A stretch of 64,000 nt of DNA, from contig OZ037767.1 in NCBI GenBank assembly GCA_964035545.1, forward strand, positions 9,496,581-9,560,580, written 5' to 3'. Made by a program: the position numbers and the translations under genes. This DNA comes from Bugula neritina. Its lineage: Eukaryota > Animalia > Bryozoa. The notes below the pieces were generated by a model. The model worked only from the letters and a program-made list of their open reading frames with translations, did no database searches and was not told the origin of the DNA. Numbering within the stretch: position 1 is the first letter of the stretch; the number at the start of each line of letters is the position of its first letter. Below, one piece after another: positions 753-15,375 of this stretch.

Positions 753-4399
<3,647 letters not shown>

Positions 4400-5184: not shown

Positions 5185-8100
5185 CTACAGCTTATAGTCT
5201 TTTGATCTTGTATCCATGTAACCTTTAACCTTGGGCAATGACTCAAAGTTTTTTCTCCAGCTCTGTACTTTTGGCGACATTCTGCTCCAGATATCTGGAA
5301 CTACTGAATCTTCAATGATCTCCATGGTCCCATACAGCCAGAAATCAGCTATTGATAGCTAAAAAAAGTAAACCGCTGTTATTGTAATGTTTATTGTAGC
5401 ACTCACTGTGGCAGTTATTGCGGTTGTTCGAGTGTGACATACTGATGTATGGATATTATGAGCAACAAAAAACAGAATACTATTGAAATGGTAGCCTACA
5501 TGCCCAGAGTTATACGAAATATATACACTGTTATTTTCAACAGTATTCTTATAGCTTGCTCTAGTGATTATCAATATGTTCAGAAAGGCATATGGAATAA
5601 GTCCAAGATTTATAATAGTCTACATACAATTATTGTGGAACAGCTTGACCATTTTCGCACAGAGGTCTTTATTTCTCTGGGTATTTTAATTTATATGTTG
5701 CCTTAATGCTTTGACAGGATAAAAGTATGACCAAACACACCACCTACCTTTTTTAGGAGCCACATATCTCCAGTGATATGGTCATCTAAATATTTGTTAA
5801 GTAAGACAAGGTCTTTTTCCACAAACTCCTTTTCTTTTACTTTTCTTGTTTCTTCATCCATTTTCCCTGTGCCAAGTAAAAACCTGGATGGGAAGATGGT
5901 GGACCTGCAGTCTTCTATCATATACACTAGAGCATTACACTCTACTTCTTCTTCTCCTCCTGTTAGACCTGCAACACAATACTTTGTCTGTTATATACAA
6001 CACAATACTTTATCTGCTGTATCCCAGCCAATATGACCATTGGTGTTCACTCGGCTGGTTTATTTATGCTCCAGGCTTACCTGTCTCTGATCCTAGATAG
6101 TTTAGAATAGCCAAACTTGTGGTAATTTCTTCATCCCCAACTTTTAGCACTGGAAGAAATCCCATTGGAGTACCTACAGTTTAAAAACATGCCAGTAAAA
6201 TAGTTTACTATCATAAAATATGAAAAAAACACAAAACATTATCAAGTCTTCATTCAAGCAGTTGAGCCAACTTCATGCTTTTAAATCAACTTTGGTAAAT
6301 GATAATATTTTTACTGCGTTATAATTGGTACAATAGCATACTATTCTATCTATAGGCCTACAATATGTCTATGCTCTATATAGTATAAGAAATGGTTTTA
6401 AATTTTAAAGTACATATATGTAAATGTTATTATTTAAAGAGAAGTATTTATTTGCCTTATGACTGTGCAAAATATATCGTTTTGCCAAATAATTATTATC
6501 TTTCTTGACTTGATCAGCTATATTATACTTGACTGAAATGTTACATGAGCACTTTCACACTGTTGAAATTTTCAGGAAATATATATATATTATATACAAA
6601 CAGTGCTACAGTTAGCCACTATAAAAGTGTTTAGTAAAAAAATATATATACATCAAACAGATAATTAGATAGCGTTTCATTTATAATACAAACTTACTAG
6701 GTTTCAGAGCTGGCCACTCATCAAAGGTTACAAGTTCATTCTCATGGTCAACATCAGCATGAGCAAATATCATTCTGTACGGTTCACATCTTCCCCTTAC
6801 TCCGTCAAAGTATGTTAGCTTCATTTTCTCACCACACTTCCCTTCACTTTTCTAAGCATAGGTCATCAATTTTGAACCTCAGTTGAAAATTTTATAATAT
6901 GTGGTTCATGTAATCCACTGTAAACTTATATACTTCAGCTCTCAACACAAAACTTAAATATTGTTACAGCATATTAATTCCTTAATCTCAATTTCAGTAA
7001 ACTCAATATAGTTTGTCAACTTAATATTCGAAGTTATTTGTCCAAAATTAGTTCTTCTATTCTGAATAAGCTAACAATATTATACCAAGTATTGGGCTAT
7101 TTGAGGAATACACTCAAAGTTTTTCCTCCAGCTTTGTACTTTTGGTCCCATTCTTGTCCAAGCATCTTCGTCGAGAGAGTCAGTAATAACTTTCATTGTT
7201 CCGTACAGCCAGAAATCAGCTGCTGTCAACTGAAACAATATTCTAGAGTAAGTCCACCCTCAGCTATGATGTACATGAATGTAAATATCTCATATTAGAT
7301 AGTTGTTTTATAGCTAATGTACACCTTTCATACCTTAGAAGACAATAATACACATGGCATAGTAAACTAAGAGAATATAGAAACCAAATACTGTCAGAAG
7401 TTGACAAATCGAAAGCTAATAACTGATATAGATGATCCTTATAATTTCTGCTTATAGAGTAAAATTCATCAACTAAAAATGACTTGCCATTTTGTAGCTT
7501 GTTTTCAATTAATTTCATGTCATAACTTGCAAGTTTTAAAATGAAAGAAATAAGAATAAAAATTTGCGAAGCTTGAATTCGTATGTTTCTCATTAATTAA
7601 ACATAGCTGAAAACCAAGCGGCTGACTGCATGTGATGGCAGGTACCACATGTGAGCTGTAAATGATGGCAGGTGATAGCAGGTGACTGCATGTGATGGCA
7701 GGTACCGCATGTGAGCTGTGAACTATTTCATGTGTCACATGTTTAACAACTGTGTGACAGATATTTGGTGGCTCTATAAACTTTATGCCAAGCGTTACCT
7801 CCCAAACATGTCAGTAGTGCTATTAATTAGTGATAGTAACTTAATTATCACAATCTATAAACATTATTGCTTGTACTGTTATTCAGTTTTTATTCAATAT
7901 TGTTGGCTTTGTTGTGCTGTCATAACTACTATTACTAAGTGATACTAAATGTTGTCACTATACACACTTCAACAACTGTGTTTGCATTGTCTACTAATAC
8001 ATTGTTTTATTTACTTTGCTGTAAAACACACTCAGCCAAAATTAAATCCATGAGGTGTTGATCATCAAATTTCACTAAATGTTTACTAATGTTGTCAAAG

Positions 8101-11100
8101 CAAGCAACCTTATCCTAATAATCTGCTAATTCGTCAGGTCAAATAGCAACAACTCAATTTTAAAAAAAACCATTCGTACTACTATGATATTTATTTGATC
8201 TCATAAATTAAATTTTATGTTTTGCATTACGATATATGAAGTTTGACTTTTGCTGCTTTGTATTGAACATGAGCGAATATTGACATTTACAATATTTCAG
8301 TTGTAGCTGCCTTATCTAAACATTTAATCTATTTATTTAAACTATTTTAAACTGTAATGCCATGCAGTGGATGCAGTGCAATAAAGCCGTAATTCATAAA
8401 CTTTCTTCATTGTGCAATCTAACAGTGAAGTTTTACAAATAACATGTTTTTATGTCTGTGATATGTAATAAATAAATAAATAAATCAATCAATCAATCAG
8501 TCAAACACGAATTACACGAAATTTGCCTCACATATACATTTTATGTAACCTGACTTATTCTGTATCCTCAGACTTTATTCAATAAAGGCCAATGTTTATT
8601 CTGAAGCAAAAATACCTGCATGCATAGTGCATACTAATTAACTGCAACCATACTGCAAGCATATTTTACCTGTGTGCATCTTTTACTTGCAGACAGCTTC
8701 AGCAAATAACTATTACATATGCAGTTACTGGTATATCTCATTGAATGATCGGCTCATACATACCTTAGACAGGAGCCACTTGGATCCCGTGATGTTAGAC
8801 TCCAGATAAGTTGACAGGGTGGCTAGTGGCCCTTCAGCAAAGGCTTTACACTTTTCTTGCCTCGTTTCCTCATTCATCTTCTGTGTTTTAATATGAAGTC
8901 TGTTGAGAAAAAGGTCACCACTCCTACAGTCTTCTATCATGTTAACCATGGCGTCACAGGCTGCTTGCTCCATACTATCTTTCCCTTTAAGGTCTGCATA
9001 TACAGGTATACAATACTCATTCATTGCAGCAGCTGAAAAACTGTGAATTTTTATATCACCATATGGTTCATAGTTTTCATGAGAGTGCGAATCAGTTGCT
9101 TAGTAAAAACAGAAACATTTTACTCTCACAAATTATTTTATAAAATTTTTTTTGTATACCTACAATGATACACCATAACACTACTCTGGTAGCCTATTTT
9201 ACCTATTTTACTGGTAGAAATAGACAGCATATATGTGAATAATACACTATGGCATTGCAGTAACCATTTACTCTTTGTCCTAGGCAAATCTCTTTTCTCA
9301 TGCTTAGCCAACATAGTGATTTCTGTAAACTAGTAGGCTCTGAACTGTTGACAGAAGTGATAGACAAGGTAGCTGTGATAAAATGGCGAGATGAAAAGGG
9401 GTGCCAACACCTCGCCCCTCCTCACCTAACTTAACGAAAAGCTGTAGGGAGAATTCCTCTCACTGAATTTTACCATTTTCTATACTTAAATTACAGTATA
9501 GCTTAGTGAACCTTATGACTAATTTTTCAGTTGGCTTATTGAAAACTCAGTGGCAACGTGTAAAGCTGTTGAGTATTTACCTGCCACTCCAGCCAGGTAA
9601 CTGAGAATAGACAGACTAGAGAGTAGTTCTTCAGATCCAACTGTCATTATAGGAAGTGTACCCATTTTGGTCTCTGCAAAAGTTGAAGTTAAAAAATTAT
9701 GCTGCAGTTCTCTGAAATTGAAAGTCTAGAAAAGTTGTAGGTGTTTGCAGTGTTTTTTTGCACAGTATATTTGAAGTTTTGCATAATAATGCTGATGTTA
9801 TATTCTAGTGCTACAGCTATGCATCATTTAAATAAACTGCTTGAAAGCTAGTTCATTGCCCTTGTTACACTTGCTTTAGTGAAGATGGAATATCTACCAA
9901 TTCTATGAAGTAGGTCTATTTCTTAGAATAGGTGTTACATAAGGATTAATTCATAACTCATAATTCATAAGCCATTACACCACATTTATAAAATAGCCCT
10001 AAAACTAATGGTTGTTGTTATTACTCTCAGACTACACGGTGGAAAATAATAAATGAGTCATACTTGGTTTCAGTGCTGGCCAGTCCTCCAATGGTATGAT
10101 TTCATTCTTAAACTCAGTTTCCGAGTAAGCAAGTATCATAAGAAGAGGCTCACACCGACCCCCATCTCCAAAATGTGTGAATTTTATTTGACCACTAGGT
10201 TGAGCAGGCTGTAATCAATCAGCAAAAATAATCAGTTTTAGATTTTTTCTTCTTTTCCTATGCAAACACCAAACTCTCTTACTTTATTAGTGAATCTAAA
10301 GATTCCCAAAACAGCAAAATTCCCCATTCGATCAACCTTTTAAGATTAACTCAATTGAAGTTTTTCTAAATTTCCAGGCTCAATCATCATACGTCAACTG
10401 ACAGGCTGCTTAATGTAAATCTCTGTTTTAATAATTCAACTGCTTGATCTGTGAGTTTTGTTTCTTTTAGTAGTGATTTTGAGGGCTGAGTAAAAACAGT
10501 ATTTTTCAGCAAAAAGTTGTGATTTGAAAATGAATGTTGATTTTTACACCCACCAGCTTCTATGATGAATTTTAATATGAAGCTTTTGGGGGTGTAAGCT
10601 ATATTGCTCTACTCCACTTGTTTGCTTAATAACACGATTAAGATAGAGACGGCTGTATGGTTTAATCTACGAAATCTGAAGAGATTTAGCTGACAACTTT
10701 TATCTTATTCATCTTTTTATCTTAATCAGCATTGTTCTTATTTCAACCTTAAAACCTTCTGATTTCAATTGCACATATTAGCAGTGCTACATCTTACTGT
10801 GGAAGTATTACTTGCATAGTAGGCCTATGCATTTTCTATTTGAATTGCTTATCTGCAGAGAAATTTTAACATCCAAGTTTAATTGTTTAAGCAGCCTGAA
10901 AGCTAAAGGTAGTCTGTATTACAGCCTATGTGTTAAAAGAACGCAAACTTCATTGTATCTAGAGCCCATATACAGAAAAGATAGCCATTATTAGAAAAAT
11001 GTATACAGTATTGTGAGAGCATGTTTCTACCTGAGTTGGAGTTGTCTGCTTAGATTGTGCCTGCTTAGTTGTAGGAGCTGGTGGCGAGGCCCCTGCAGTT

Positions 11101-11135
11101 GTTACTGGTGCAGATTTACTTTCATTACACCCCAT
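5185..11135 (-). CDS. Tandem two-domain sigma-like glutathione S-transferase with N-terminal MGCxxS acylation motif (452 aa if spliced as one gene)
   Basis: Exons (minus strand) 11135-11031, 10208-10064, 9673-9581, 8993-8764, 7229-7086, 6851-6698, 6173-6081, 5968-5748, 5358-5185. All junctions are GT-AG and phase-compatible; total 1359 nt = 452 aa plus stop. Domain 1: IKFTHFGDGGRCEPLLMIL...DWPALKP...GTLP...LTAADFWL. Domain 2: MKLTYFDGVRGRCEPYRMIF...EWPALKP...GFLP...LSIADFWL. GST identity is secure; the fusion is inferred. Confidence 0.8.
7622..7720. repeat. About 60-bp tandem duplication rich in E-box-like hexamers, in a GST intron
   Basis: TGACTGCATGTGATGGCAGGTACC(A/G)CATGTGAGCTGT occurs twice, 60 bp apart. 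Confidence 0.75.
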
Positions 11136-11408
11136 GCTGATATAGGAACAGAGCTGATGGAACCTGACTTATTCAGACGCTACCCAGTAATACAATGACA
11201 TACAAGTGTCACCTCCGCTATATATTGCAATGGCTCAGTATAATCAGTTTTCCAAACTCACCTAATGTGTTTGTTTTTCATCTTATTTAAACACATATGA
11301 CTGGGCATTTTTATTCTATCGGATTGCCTGAAGATTGATTTCGCAGTTATATCAATATAATACAGCCTATATCTTTTTGTACTAAAATATCAGGTATTCA
11401 CAATCATG

Positions 11409-11881
11409 CAGGGTTAGAGTAATTATAATTGATTGCAATTAATTGCATTTTTCAAGTAACTGAATGTTATTTGTAAATAATGTATAAACTGTAATTGTAA
11501 TTACACTTCTAATGTAATTGATTTTTACAATTACTTTATAATTACATATCAGCTAATATACAAATTTTTAAATGAAACTTCATACTTCTCCTACCATGCC
11601 TACTGTTTAATAAAAAGTTCACATTAGTTCTTTGTAGTATTGTATCACCCATTTTTAAGAACAAAGGTGGTTGTCCACTGGTAAAATTGCCCCAGGTAGT
11701 TGGACACAAGAGCAAGATTGTATAACTTCAATTTATCCCTCGTGAGATTAAAATTAATTGTAATTAATTACATTACCATGTAATTGTAATTAATTTCATT
11801 AATTTTTAACTGATATTATAAAATTGTAATAGGCAAACTTTCATGTAATTATGCATTCATATGCAATTGACCCCAACCCTG
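11409..11881. mobile_element. Degenerate hAT-like MITE between the DNAJA 3' end and the GST 5' end
   Basis: Ends CAGGGTTAGAGTAATT and AATTGACCCCAACCCTG are imperfect inverted repeats, with subterminal GTAATT repeats. No clean TSD. Confidence 0.6.
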
Positions 11882-12444
11882 TCCACAATCAACAAAGACA
11901 AAGTTTATGTAGAGTAACATACTTCTGTATTTATAGTAATAAAAATGTGCAATTTATGGAGCAAACCTTCTGGTAAGATTATTTTAGTTATTGTAGATGA
12001 CAGGAGAACACAAAAATATTCATGTTTATTTAAGCTCACAGTTTTATTCAATTTCCACTAGACCTTTCTACCACTGCTCACAATCCCAAAAAGAGGCAAA
12101 ACCATAGTTAGTCAAGTCAATAGTAGCCAAAATATCGCAAACAACAATGAAAAGTCTGTGGCATCATAAAAACAACTTTAAATTAAATACAGTGTCAATA
12201 GAGAATGTGAAAAAGACAAATGCATAAGATGGATAAAAATGCCCATCACAGATCTACAATGTGAAATGACAGCACAAATTCAGACAATGTCAATAAAAGC
12301 TAAGCTCTTTGTTATGTAATGGTGGCATAATTTTGTTCAGTAATCATAACATATATTGTATTATAATGACCAAAGAGGAATGGTAAATTAACTAGGCTGG
12401 AGACAGAATACATATAAATGAGAATAGCCTAAGAGTTATATGTT

Positions 12445-15375
12445 TTACTGAGTTCCACACTGAACCCGTTGTCCATGACCTTGCATCTCATCATCACTGT
12501 CATACGCTTCACCATTCTGATGCTACAGAAATATGACACATGTATTATACCTGTATTTATCAATATTCAAATAGGGAGCATAACTCCTGTGCATTCAAAA
12601 TAATCAGTAAAGATTCACTTGATTGAACATGGTTAAATGCAAGTTGAATGTTTGACTCACATACATTATAATATTACTATTTAAAGACAAGCACCACCGC
12701 TTACCCGGTTTCTAGCTGATTCAGGGTTGTACTCGTGGAGCTCAACTTCTTCCATCTGGGAGTTGTGTTCCGCAGAGTTCTTTGGTGGCAAAGCCTTTTC
12801 TAACAACTACAACAATTGCACAAGATATGACCGCCACATCAAACTTTGTATAACGACATGCAATAGGAGGTGTTCAGATATGAGTATTGTAACATAAAGT
12901 GAACATAATCTGGTTTATACCCAAGAGTTGCAGCATATATGAAAACACATACATGTCACACAAAGACGTGACATGATGAAGGTTGAGCACTGTCCCTACC
13001 TTGATCTTTTCGGGTGTAAAGAAGCTGCTCTCTGGAAACTCCACCTCAAACTGTATAATGAGTTGTCCCTTCAGGAAAGGATTTTTGTGGGTGGGCATCC
13101 CCTCACCACTGATGGACCGGACAGCGTTGTGCTTTATGACTTGCCCTGAAGAACACCAGTTACAGCTGCAGGCACAGTACACAGAAGCAAGAAACAGACT
13201 ATCGTAGTAACTAGGCAGTTAGGTGTTGAATATTGCATATCCTATAAACATCAAAACAAAGTATTTGCTACGTAAATGTCCACAGTAGCCACACACCTGG
13301 CTCTTGTTTCAAGAACAGAGTTCGATCATCAAGTGTTTTTATAGTCTTCTCGAAACCGCACAGAGCTTCAGTGAGGGAAATAGACATAGTCATAGCAAGG
13401 TCAGAGCCGTGGCGCTTGAACAAGCTGTGTGGTTTCTCCTCAAGTATGATGATGACATCACCCGGTTCCAGCCCGGGCTCCTGGTCCCCTTCGCCGGTGA
13501 ACTTAATACGCTGGTCTTCCTTCATACCTGTTTAATTGATCGATTTATTACATGACACAGACATGGAAACATGTTGCGAAATTTAGTGTAAATATTGGCC
13601 ATAAGAAATAGACATAAACAAAAATGGAGAAAGAAAAGTAAAGTCAGAACTATATTGGATTATTTAAAATAAAAGATCATTTAAGTGTAGTTGACTTTAC
13701 ACTAGACTTATAGCATGCAACACGGGCTAGCTAAACCATAGCATCTAACTTTATTATTTTCAATATCTTGTTCATCATTTTGTTGTTTTGACTGCGGGAA
13801 CACATCTGGTTGCCTAGCAACATATGATGAATGTACAAACACTATAAAAGCACAGCATAGTGAAACAAAATGCCACAGATTGGAATTTGTTAAACACAAC
13901 TTTTCTCTGCACAAGTTGCTGCGCACCTTTGTCAATATGAACTTCTAGTATCTTCTTTTCTTGAATTGTCTTCTCTCCATTACAATCCGGACACATATAT
14001 TTAGCATTAATTTTCTCTCCGCGGCCTTTGCAAATATTACAGTGTGTTTGGAACTGCTGCACCATCCCGGGACCAATTTGCTGCATCCTGACTTGTACGC
14101 CTCTACCATTACATGGAGTGCATTTCTCTACAGCACCTTCCTTTGTGGCACCCACACCTACAGAGTAACAGTAATAGATACAGAAAAACAGTAATGGGTA
14201 CAGGGCACACAGTAATAGATACAGAGTAACAGTAATAGATACAGAGCACACAGTAATGGATACAGAGCACACAGTAATGGGTACAGAGCACACAGTAATG
14301 GGTACAGAGCACACAGTAATGGATACAGAGCACACAGTAATGGGTACAGAGCACACAGTAATGGGTACAGAGCACACAGTAATGGATACAGAGCACACAG
14401 TAATGAACACAGAGCCCAAATTTTGCAGAAAAAGATTTCCTGTTCAATATTATAACCCATGAAAAATTGTGGATGGTGAAAAGGTGTGAACAGTTACCTT
14501 TACAGGTTGGGCATATTATACTTTTTTGTAAAGCTAACTTCTTCATAGTGCCATTGTATACATCTTCAAGAGAGACCTGCAAGTGTTGCAACATATAATT
14601 AGCAAGAAAATTTTTTGATACCAACGGCTTTTTATACTTAGATCTCAAAAACAATTATTTACGCATGATGTAAAGATTAAAGAGACATTAGTGAAAAAAG
14701 CGTAAGCTGATATGCCAACGTTAAAACTAATACACTATGAGATGATACAAGGTGGGAGAAGATACAAGGTGGGAGATGATACAAGGTGGAAGATGATTGG
14801 TGAGCTAGTACAACTGGCACAGTTACCTTGAGTGGATGAGCAACATCCTTTCCCCTCGGGGGTCCTCTTTGCCGACCTCCACCCCTGCCACCAAAGAACA
14901 TATCAAACAGATTCGTGGGAGAACTGAATCCACCATCACTGCCCCCCTCTTTCAGTGCTTGCTCTCCACCTTCGTCGTACAAACTTCTCTTTTTAGGATC
15001 AGATAGAGTCTCATATGCTTGAGAGATCAATTTGAACTAAAGGGAAAAAGAGAGCAGTGCTCAACATTATCTTCATAAAAAATGCTCCCAATAAAATTTA
15101 TTAACATCACAATTATACTGCAATCCAAGGGCATACCGCTCTGTACACTGCATTGCAATAAAACGTAGTTTTTATATGCACCCAGGTGTGCTCATTATTT
15201 AGCACCTACTAAATTATCATAAATTTATACATACTTTTTCAGCTTTTTCGACATCACCAGGATTTTTATCAGGATGATATTTCAAAGCCATTTTTCTGTA
15301 GGCTTTCTTCAAGTCTGAATCGCTTGCATTTGTTTGTACTCCAAGTACATCATAATATTCAGTTTCTTTAACCAT
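12445..15375 (-). CDS. DNAJA1: DnaJ (Hsp40) subfamily A co-chaperone, DNAJA1/2/4-like
   Basis: Exons 15375-15235, 15036-14827, 14576-14498, 14157-13927, 13527-13297, 13145-13000, 12806-12705, 12522-12445. [13 protein letters not shown]...YHPDKNP (J domain, HPD motif), G/F-rich region, four CxxCxGxG-type zinc motifs, C-terminal domains, CaaX end VQCGTQ*. Confidence 0.93.
14160..14415. repeat. 21-bp minisatellite in a DNAJA intron, abutting the splice acceptor
   Basis: Unit CAGAGCACACAGTAATGG(A/G)TA, about 12 copies, degenerating into the acceptor (minus-strand CTCTGTAG at 14158-14165). Confidence 0.92.

Follow-up and report, generated by a model that had tools for sequence, protein, structure and literature searches.

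An upstream exon encoding a candidate dual-acylation signal and tether on a tandem sigma-class glutathione S-transferase of Bugula neritina

Cytosolic-class glutathione S-transferases (GSTs) are soluble dimers, and where glutathione (GSH) chemistry takes place at membranes, the unrelated MAPEG proteins or GST-like proteins with transmembrane anchors are usually held responsible. Here, a GST gene of the bryozoan Bugula neritina was analysed, which lies on the minus strand of a 64,000-nucleotide stretch of contig OZ037767.1 (hereafter the window), together with a short upstream exon for which a preliminary description had proposed a dual-acylation motif and a flexible tether. Searches of open-access literature text yielded neither a soluble-class GST with N-myristoylation nor a tandem sigma-class GST.

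Several described systems share single features with this gene. The encoded N-terminus resembles that of the Src-family kinases (Fyn, Lyn, Yes, Lck) and of the G-alpha-i/o/z proteins, in which Met-Gly-Cys, Ser6 and Lys7 are followed by an unstructured segment. Unlike in these proteins, the cargo is here a GST, the sequence relation is limited to the heptapeptide and the modification is predicted from sequence. Haematopoietic prostaglandin D synthase (HPGDS; 1pd2, 2vcq), a vertebrate sigma-class GST, comes closest to both bryozoan domains in sequence and in structure, with an identity of only 24–29%. HPGDS, about 199 residues long, lacks any extension and occurs as a soluble homodimer, whereas bryozoan domain 1 has a His at the position of Tyr8. 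Drosophila GstS1 (GST-2; 1m0u) combines the sigma fold with a Pro/Ala-rich disordered N-terminal extension of about 45 residues. In contrast to the bryozoan protein, it has a single domain, forms a homodimer and keeps the catalytic Tyr and, to our knowledge, its extension neither starts with Met-Gly-Cys nor is lipidated.

GSH- or redox-dependent chemistry at membranes, which for the bryozoan protein is a proposal, is also found with GDAP1, mPGES-2, MAPEG proteins and the myristoylated FSP1. The anchors of the first three are transmembrane or hydrophobic segments, whereas FSP1, which needs its myristate for plasma-membrane protection, has an unrelated fold; none of them is a sigma-class GST with an N-terminal acylation signal. 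GDAP1, which is membrane-anchored, binds 4-hydroxynonenal (bioRxiv 10.1101/2022.10.28.514248), and FSP1 guards the plasma membrane from lipid peroxidation (PMC10582465). Human GSTP1 is a cytosolic-class GST with a lipid that associates with the plasma membrane (PMC11398671). It differs in belonging to the pi class, in having a single domain and in being palmitoylated at internal residues without any Gly2; according to its authors it cannot be myristoylated (PMC11398671). A member of the Arabidopsis GST family is found at the plasma membrane through an unknown signal (PMC2657551).

Set beside these systems, the B. neritina locus is likely to be a nine-exon gene for a 452-residue chain, in which a lipid-anchor signal and a disordered, net-basic tether of about 42 residues precede two sigma-class GST domains, as judged from the sequence.

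The probable first coding exon and its orthologues

The segment 11135-11031 (minus strand) comprises 105 nt or 35 codons with the translation MGCNESKSAPVTTAGASPPAPTTKQAQSKQTTPTQ (MGCNESK...PTQ), and is very probably the true first coding exon of the two-domain GST gene. The sequence context of its start codon is strong (A at -3, G at +4), a donor GT follows directly at 11030-11029, and the acceptor AG at 10210-10209 stands behind a pyrimidine-rich tract. Exon 2 opens at 10208 (CCT GCT...) and reads PAQPSGQ-IKFTHFGDGGRCEPL, the joint with exon 1 being in phase 0. The size, strand, translation and splice signals of the exon, as well as the phase-0 joint to PAQPSGQ, were found exactly as first described. 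The exon had also been reported as missing from the ORF track (the list of open reading frames), which is the case because the unspliced ORF holding it (10959-11135) encodes 58 aa and falls just under the 60-aa default of such lists.

In exon 2, no ATG precedes the GST core, whereas the paralogous domain 2 starts with MKLTYF, and a stop codon lies just 5' of the acceptor. An intact domain 1 therefore needs an upstream coding exon. The sole in-frame ATG upstream of exon 1 (11201-11199) belongs to a 10-codon upstream ORF closing at TAA 11171-11169. The element TATATAG at 11224-11218 is a possible core promoter and may put the transcription start near or after this ATG. A search of the B. neritina genome revealed no further copy of exon 1.

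Contigs of a sibling Bugula genome (L006-L009), obtained from metagenomes of the Joint Genome Institute (JGI) and the Sequence Read Archive (SRA), are collinear with the window, including the neighbouring DnaJ gene, at about 86-88% identity. From exon 1 to exon 6, the exons are 95.3% identical with 0 gaps, as against 83.2% and 274 gap columns for the introns, and the codon changes amount to 33 synonymous and 7 non-synonymous. Exon 1 itself is 95.2% identical without gaps and its frame is open, with 4 synonymous changes and 1 non-synonymous change (P19A); the corresponding values for intron 1 are 80.7% and 86 gap columns. The splice sites of introns 1 and 5 are intact in the sibling genome, and the upstream in-frame stop is present as in the window, with no intervening ATG.

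An exhaustive HMMER search with exon 4 returned 11 proteins, with XP_067942554.1 of Watersipora subatra as the single full-length match. This protein of 454 aa, annotated as 'uncharacterized protein', starts with MGCNESK and continues with a 34-residue Ser/Thr/Pro/Lys-rich stretch, unlike that of the window in sequence, and two GST domains. At the W. subatra locus, exon 1 has exactly 35 codons and ends in phase 0, each of the nine exons has its counterpart in the window, and an in-frame stop is located 34 codons 5' of the start with no ATG between.

A third, bryozoan-like lineage possesses a 653-aa three-domain GST with the N-terminus MGCDQSK. Four contigs that had been assembled independently, from two SRA runs and two JGI samples, encode it with no introns. 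They share a 5' untranslated region (5'UTR) of 64-88 nt with in-frame stops and no ATG, and their coding sequences differ by 2 nt. These contigs represent spliced mRNAs, so that the transcript species carries the motif fused to its GST, as the true N-terminus. A pattern scan of metagenome contigs additionally delivered a genomic contig (L017) from a relative of the transcript species, 81-87% identical to the transcripts. Here, MGCDQSK is found in a separate exon of 33 codons, followed by GT, an intron of about 570 nt, AG and the exon encoding FTHF, again in phase 0. Three more genomic contigs from other relatives contain the ATG-less FTHF exon or later exons, their coverage ending before any exon 1. 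When protein collections were searched by word index, only the W. subatra protein, the 653-aa protein and one exon-2 fragment were obtained. The GC-rich contig L019 gave only matches to the pattern FTHFGDG, which were taken for chance. Taken together, the 35-codon phase-0 exon of W. subatra, the 33-codon exon of the third lineage and the intron-less transcripts joining the motif to the GST argue for the proposed junction 11031/10208.

Some observations weigh against exon 1 as the coding start of an anchored GST. The pattern MGC..[STAGCN]{not P} after an ATG occurs 1 time in the window, against a mean of 0.77 expected by chance (200 composition-matched simulated windows). Over the 270 nt 5' of the ATG, identity with the sibling genome amounts to 93-97%, as high as for exon 1, so that identity alone cannot separate exon 1 from a promoter; the coding argument drawn from the sibling rests on the 4:1 ratio of synonymous changes and on the open frame, which are small numbers. 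Furthermore, XP_067942554.1 of W. subatra derives from a computed gene model. The protein and contig collections searched gave no spliced B. neritina sequence and no spliced protein of its sibling, the support for the 11031/10208 splice coming from relatives and splice signals. The motif frequency and the conserved flank, together with the fact that the W. subatra N-terminus, used as a tblastn query on the window, reached only E = 0.78, would fit exon 1 as a chance open frame in non-coding promoter or 5'UTR sequence, starting with MGC by accident. This explanation is nevertheless extremely improbable. The same heptapeptide, exon length and phase are found in W. subatra, a near-identical heptapeptide occurs in the transcripts and the genomic exon of the third lineage, translation of exon 2 requires an exon ahead of it, and the four transcript contigs contradict the idea that the orthologous N-termini are annotation artefacts. 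What goes beyond chance is the place of exon 1 ahead of a start-less GST exon and its conservation in orthologues, and not the motif alone.

Exon 1 could also stand outside the mature GST mRNA of B. neritina, or belong only to a minor isoform, with the main protein starting elsewhere, for instance at an unrecognised 5' exon or at the Met of domain 2. A Met at the GST start of domain 2 and of the later orthologue domains makes an internal start, yielding a soluble single-domain GST, conceivable, and an AG directly precedes the ATG (11138-11137). The latter was considered as the acceptor of a 5'UTR intron or of trans-splicing; it was rejected as unsupported, since W. subatra does not conserve it and the mature 5'UTR of the transcript contigs includes a comparable CAG. 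Against another start stand the lack of an own ATG in domain 1 of six lineages, the open frame, synonymous bias and intact splice sites of exon 1 in the sibling genome, and the size and phase shared with exon 1 of W. subatra. Moreover, the poly(A) signals of the upstream DnaJ gene are located near 12048-12030, which leaves less than 1 kb for any further 5' exon of the GST gene. A start elsewhere is thus considered very unlikely.

Apart from these lineages, one eukaryotic metagenome contig (L018; SXGU01347566.1, 773-1438) was observed to encode MGCDESKARSNEP, which starts with MGCDESK and continues into a sigma-like GST N-domain with the Tyr kept. Its tether has only about 6 residues and no intron is present there; residue 13 aligns to residue 5 of HPGDS (E 1.7e-14). 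The GC content is 65-73% in the first 600 nt versus about 47-53% in the gene, and the contig may be chimeric. It may hint at anchored GSTs beyond bryozoans, by common descent or by convergence.

The candidate N-terminal signal and the tether

The substrate pattern of N-myristoyltransferase (NMT), M-G-{EDRKHPFYW}-x-x-[STAGCN]-{P}, fits the N-termini of the window, W. subatra and the 653-aa protein, and also those of L017 and L018. G2, C3, S6 and K7 are invariant across lineages, with Asn or Asp at position 4 and Glu or Gln at position 5, and Cys3 is present in all five sequences. That Gly2 follows the initiator Met directly, as had been assumed, is indicated by in-frame stops which exclude an upstream in-frame start, both in the window with its sibling counterpart and in W. 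subatra and the transcript 5'UTRs. The motif expected in orthologues was recovered as MGCNESK or MGCDQSK, with the rest of the tether diverged. Met-Gly-Cys is the consensus for dual myristoylation and palmitoylation, position 6 being decisive for myristoylation, and myristate on Gly2 followed by palmitate on Cys3 leads to fast and stable membrane binding (PMC2132482). An NMT gene was located in the B. neritina genome at C4:4125408-4126168. The heptapeptide is thus probably a dual-acylation signal of the SH4 type on a multi-domain sigma GST, which would tie the enzyme to the membrane. A point to be set against this assignment is the acidic residue at position 5 (or 4), which the pattern used tolerates.

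Exon 1 may start the protein and still serve another purpose. MGC(N/D)(E/Q)SK could be a docking peptide or a degron, could receive a different N-terminal modification, or could direct targeting through recognition by a partner protein, the GST remaining soluble. Drosophila GstS1 offers a precedent: the disordered extension of this sigma GST is comparable in length (the alignment to PDB 1m0u begins only at residue 51-54) and is regarded as binding a muscle protein and not the membrane; besides, the conservation of the heptapeptide shows constraint and not its cause. However, no lineage departs at the positions constrained by NMT, where Gly2, a small residue without charge at position 3, Ser6 and, at position 7, Lys and not Pro are always found, while variation is confined to positions 4 and 5, which are free under the NMT rules. 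In addition, Met-Gly-Cys corresponds to a published dual-acylation consensus (PMC2132482), and all three tethers are net basic, as in anchors which combine myristate with basic residues. A signal of non-lipid nature is for these reasons regarded as unlikely, and dual acylation as the preferred reading of the heptapeptide.

The tether comprises 42, 41 and 45 aa with a net charge of +2, +4 and +5 in the window, W. subatra and the 653-aa protein, respectively. S, T, P, A, G, Q, K, N and E make up 78-93% of its residues across the three lineages, and its sequence diverges between them while the first seven residues stay. For residues 1-245 of the W. subatra protein, AlphaFold2 gave a pLDDT (predicted local distance difference test) below 50 and no secondary structure at residues 1-37. 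From residue 42 onwards, the pLDDT exceeds 90 over most of the GST fold. The tether is therefore predicted to be disordered over about 40 aa, in line with the initial proposal, as modelled on the W. subatra orthologue.

The tandem sigma-class GST gene

Both domains of the W. subatra orthologue were found closest to sigma-class GSTs in the PDB, with E-values of 1.5e-17 for domain 1 and 1.5e-25 for domain 2. The best sequence matches were HPGDS, Ascaris GST1, the Schistosoma 28-kDa GST (Sh28GST) and Drosophila GST-2. Foldseek analysis of the AlphaFold2 model delivered 1pd2 (HPGDS) as top match, and also Ascaris GST1 and Sh28GST. By sequence and predicted fold, both domains are assigned to the sigma class.

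In domain 1, a His (FTHF instead of LTYF) is aligned to the catalytic Tyr8 of HPGDS. It is encoded at 10178-10176 in the window and corresponds to residue 46 in W. subatra and residue 50 in the 653-aa protein, and the same replacement was observed in six lineages. The Tyr is kept in domain 2, as well as in domains 2 and 3 of the triple form. The catalytic Tyr of sigma-class enzymes is thus missing in the tether-proximal domain 1 and present in domain 2, which leaves at least one canonical site per protein. Arg14, Trp39 and the Ser of the HPGDS Gln-Ser pair are likewise preserved at the aligned positions of domain 2. Domain 1 may consequently be a non-standard enzyme, with a modified catalytic or ligand-binding site close to the membrane.

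Every downstream domain has a Met at the canonical GST start (6824 in the window, residue 253 in W. subatra, residues 248 and 451 in the 653-aa protein). These Met residues may be relics of the duplication, or may serve as internal initiation sites for a soluble form.

When domains 1 and 2 of the orthologue were modelled as two chains, an ipSAE (interaction prediction score from aligned errors) of 0.72 was obtained, against 0.00 for the best control, a value which may reflect the memory of the model for solved GST dimers. The mark applied to this score is reached by 51 of 78 solved complexes and by 2 of 108 mismatched pairs. The runs agreed in at least 94% of contacts with a partner pLDDT of at least 87. 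The modelled interface involves residues 85-135 of domain 1 and residues 47-95 of domain 2, i.e. the helices of the ordinary GST dimer. Possible memorisation of solved dimers has to be counted against the packing of the two domains proposed below.

The exon model was established by homology mapping with the full-length orthologues and by inspection of the borders, and the window exons were searched singly. All nine exons (Table 1) have AG/GT borders, and they total 453 codons, i.e. 452 residues and the stop. Pfam GST_C_3 was detected above cut-off on exons 5 and 9; exons 2-4 searched alone gave no Pfam match, and exon 4 alone gave no match in the PDB. In the genome, exon 4 matches only the two GST domains of the window gene.

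Whether the two domains form one chain depends on the end of exon 5. Read straight through, the frame ends two codons past exon 5 at TAA 7082-7080, and domain 2 has its own ATG (6824), as would be the case for two genes, one encoding an anchored single-domain GST and the other a separately transcribed second GST. However, the donor 7085-7084 and the acceptor 6853-6852 join domain 1, the linker and domain 2 in frame, giving a single-chain tandem GST over 5185-11135. No poly(A) signal is present from 7894 to 6452, between the two GST domains, and the distance from the stop to the ATG is only 255 nt. In comparison with the sibling genome, the intervening stretch is intron-like (79.7% identity, with gaps) and the 27-nt linker is exon-like. 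Finally, the W. subatra model and the four transcript contigs are fused at the same point, in two-domain and three-domain form, respectively. Two separate genes are therefore judged highly improbable, and the tandem gene was retained.

Table 1. Elements of the tandem GST gene and its flanks (window coordinates)
Feature	Position	Strand	Remarks
TATA-like TATATAG	11218..11224	-	83-89 nt 5' of ATG; identical in sibling genome
In-frame TAA	11169..11171	-	12 codons 5' of start, no ATG between; stop also in sibling genome
Coding exon 1	11031..11135	-	Candidate dual-acylation signal MGCNESK and most of the Ser/Thr/Pro/Ala/Gln/Lys-rich tether
Intron 1	10209..11030	-	GT...AG, 822 nt
Exon 2	10064..10208	-	End of the tether (7 residues, PAQPSGQ) and beta1-alpha1 of GST domain 1 (IKFTHFGDGGRCEPL...)
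Exon 3	9581..9673	-	GST domain 1, N-terminal domain
Exon 4	8764..8993	-	GST domain 1, helical domain
Exon 5	7086..7229	-	End of GST domain 1; Pfam GST_C_3; donor GT 7085-7084
Exon 6	6698..6851	-	9-residue linker KSEGKCGEK, then GST domain 2 start MKLTYFDG...
Exon 7	6081..6173	-	GST domain 2
Exon 8	5748..5968	-	GST domain 2
Exon 9	5185..5358	-	End of GST domain 2; Pfam GST_C_3; stop TAG 5187-5185
AATAAA	5009..5014	-	First poly(A) signal past final stop

Directly upstream of the GST gene, at 12680-15200 on the minus strand, lies a DnaJ gene (type A, with a Cys-rich zinc-finger), an arrangement shared by the sibling genome. Within the DnaJ gene, tandem repeats of 21 nt and 17 nt (14159-14415 and 14739-14797) differ in copy number between the window and the sibling genome. 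An AT-rich block of 478 nt (11407-11884), situated 5' of the GST promoter and missing from the sibling contigs, is full of direct and inverted TAATTG/CAATTA repeats. A short transposon of the non-autonomous type, or an indel of repetitive sequence, may account for it. On the 3' side of the GST gene, two minisatellites were observed at 2636-3235 (45-nt unit, 13.3 copies) and 3633-3910 (12-nt unit, 23.2 copies), with 98% matches each.

Elsewhere in the assembly, matches to GST_C_3 or NMT on small unplaced contigs (C127:7842-8099, C41:68590-68853, C62:5202-5402, C86:56194-56544) contain in-frame TAA and TAG and no TGA. Their source may be an organism in which TAA and TAG are sense codons, for example a ciliate living on the bryozoan, whose DNA remained among the assembled contigs.

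Proposed membrane attachment and its significance

For acylation, membrane location, pairing of the domains and substrates, we infer the following scheme. The initiator Met would be removed, and NMT would put myristate on Gly2 during translation, the small and uncharged Cys3, Ser6 and Lys7 fitting its rules. The weakly bound protein would then be S-palmitoylated at Cys3 by a DHHC enzyme of the membrane, as are Src-family kinases and G-alpha-i/o, and both lipids together would give a stable attachment to the cytoplasmic face of the membrane. The two GST domains would pack like the subunits of an ordinary dimer, so that a single anchor would hold the pseudo-dimer about one tether length off the bilayer. 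Domain 2 would provide the canonical Tyr site, and domain 1, with its conserved His, a modified or ligand-binding site. By analogy with sigma-class relatives, the substrates would most plausibly be lipid electrophiles derived from the membrane or eicosanoid precursors.

At the level of the family, it is conceivable, though we hold it only tentatively, that bryozoans, and possibly other eukaryotes if L018 is considered, possess a distinct lineage of lipid-anchored 'soluble-type' GSTs. Its members would consist of two to three sigma domains with a built-in pseudo-dimer, a myristoyl-palmitoyl anchor, a basic disordered tether and a Tyr to His replacement in the membrane-proximal domain. The locus also illustrates that short first exons below the thresholds of ORF lists can hold decisive targeting information.

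If the proposal is true, these proteins would represent a third, independent route by which GSH chemistry is brought to membranes, beside the MAPEG proteins and the transmembrane-anchored GST-like proteins. Products of lipid peroxidation or lipids of the eicosanoid type might be what they are adapted to, and they would then offer a novel, simple way to detoxify locally or to make lipid mediators at the membrane.

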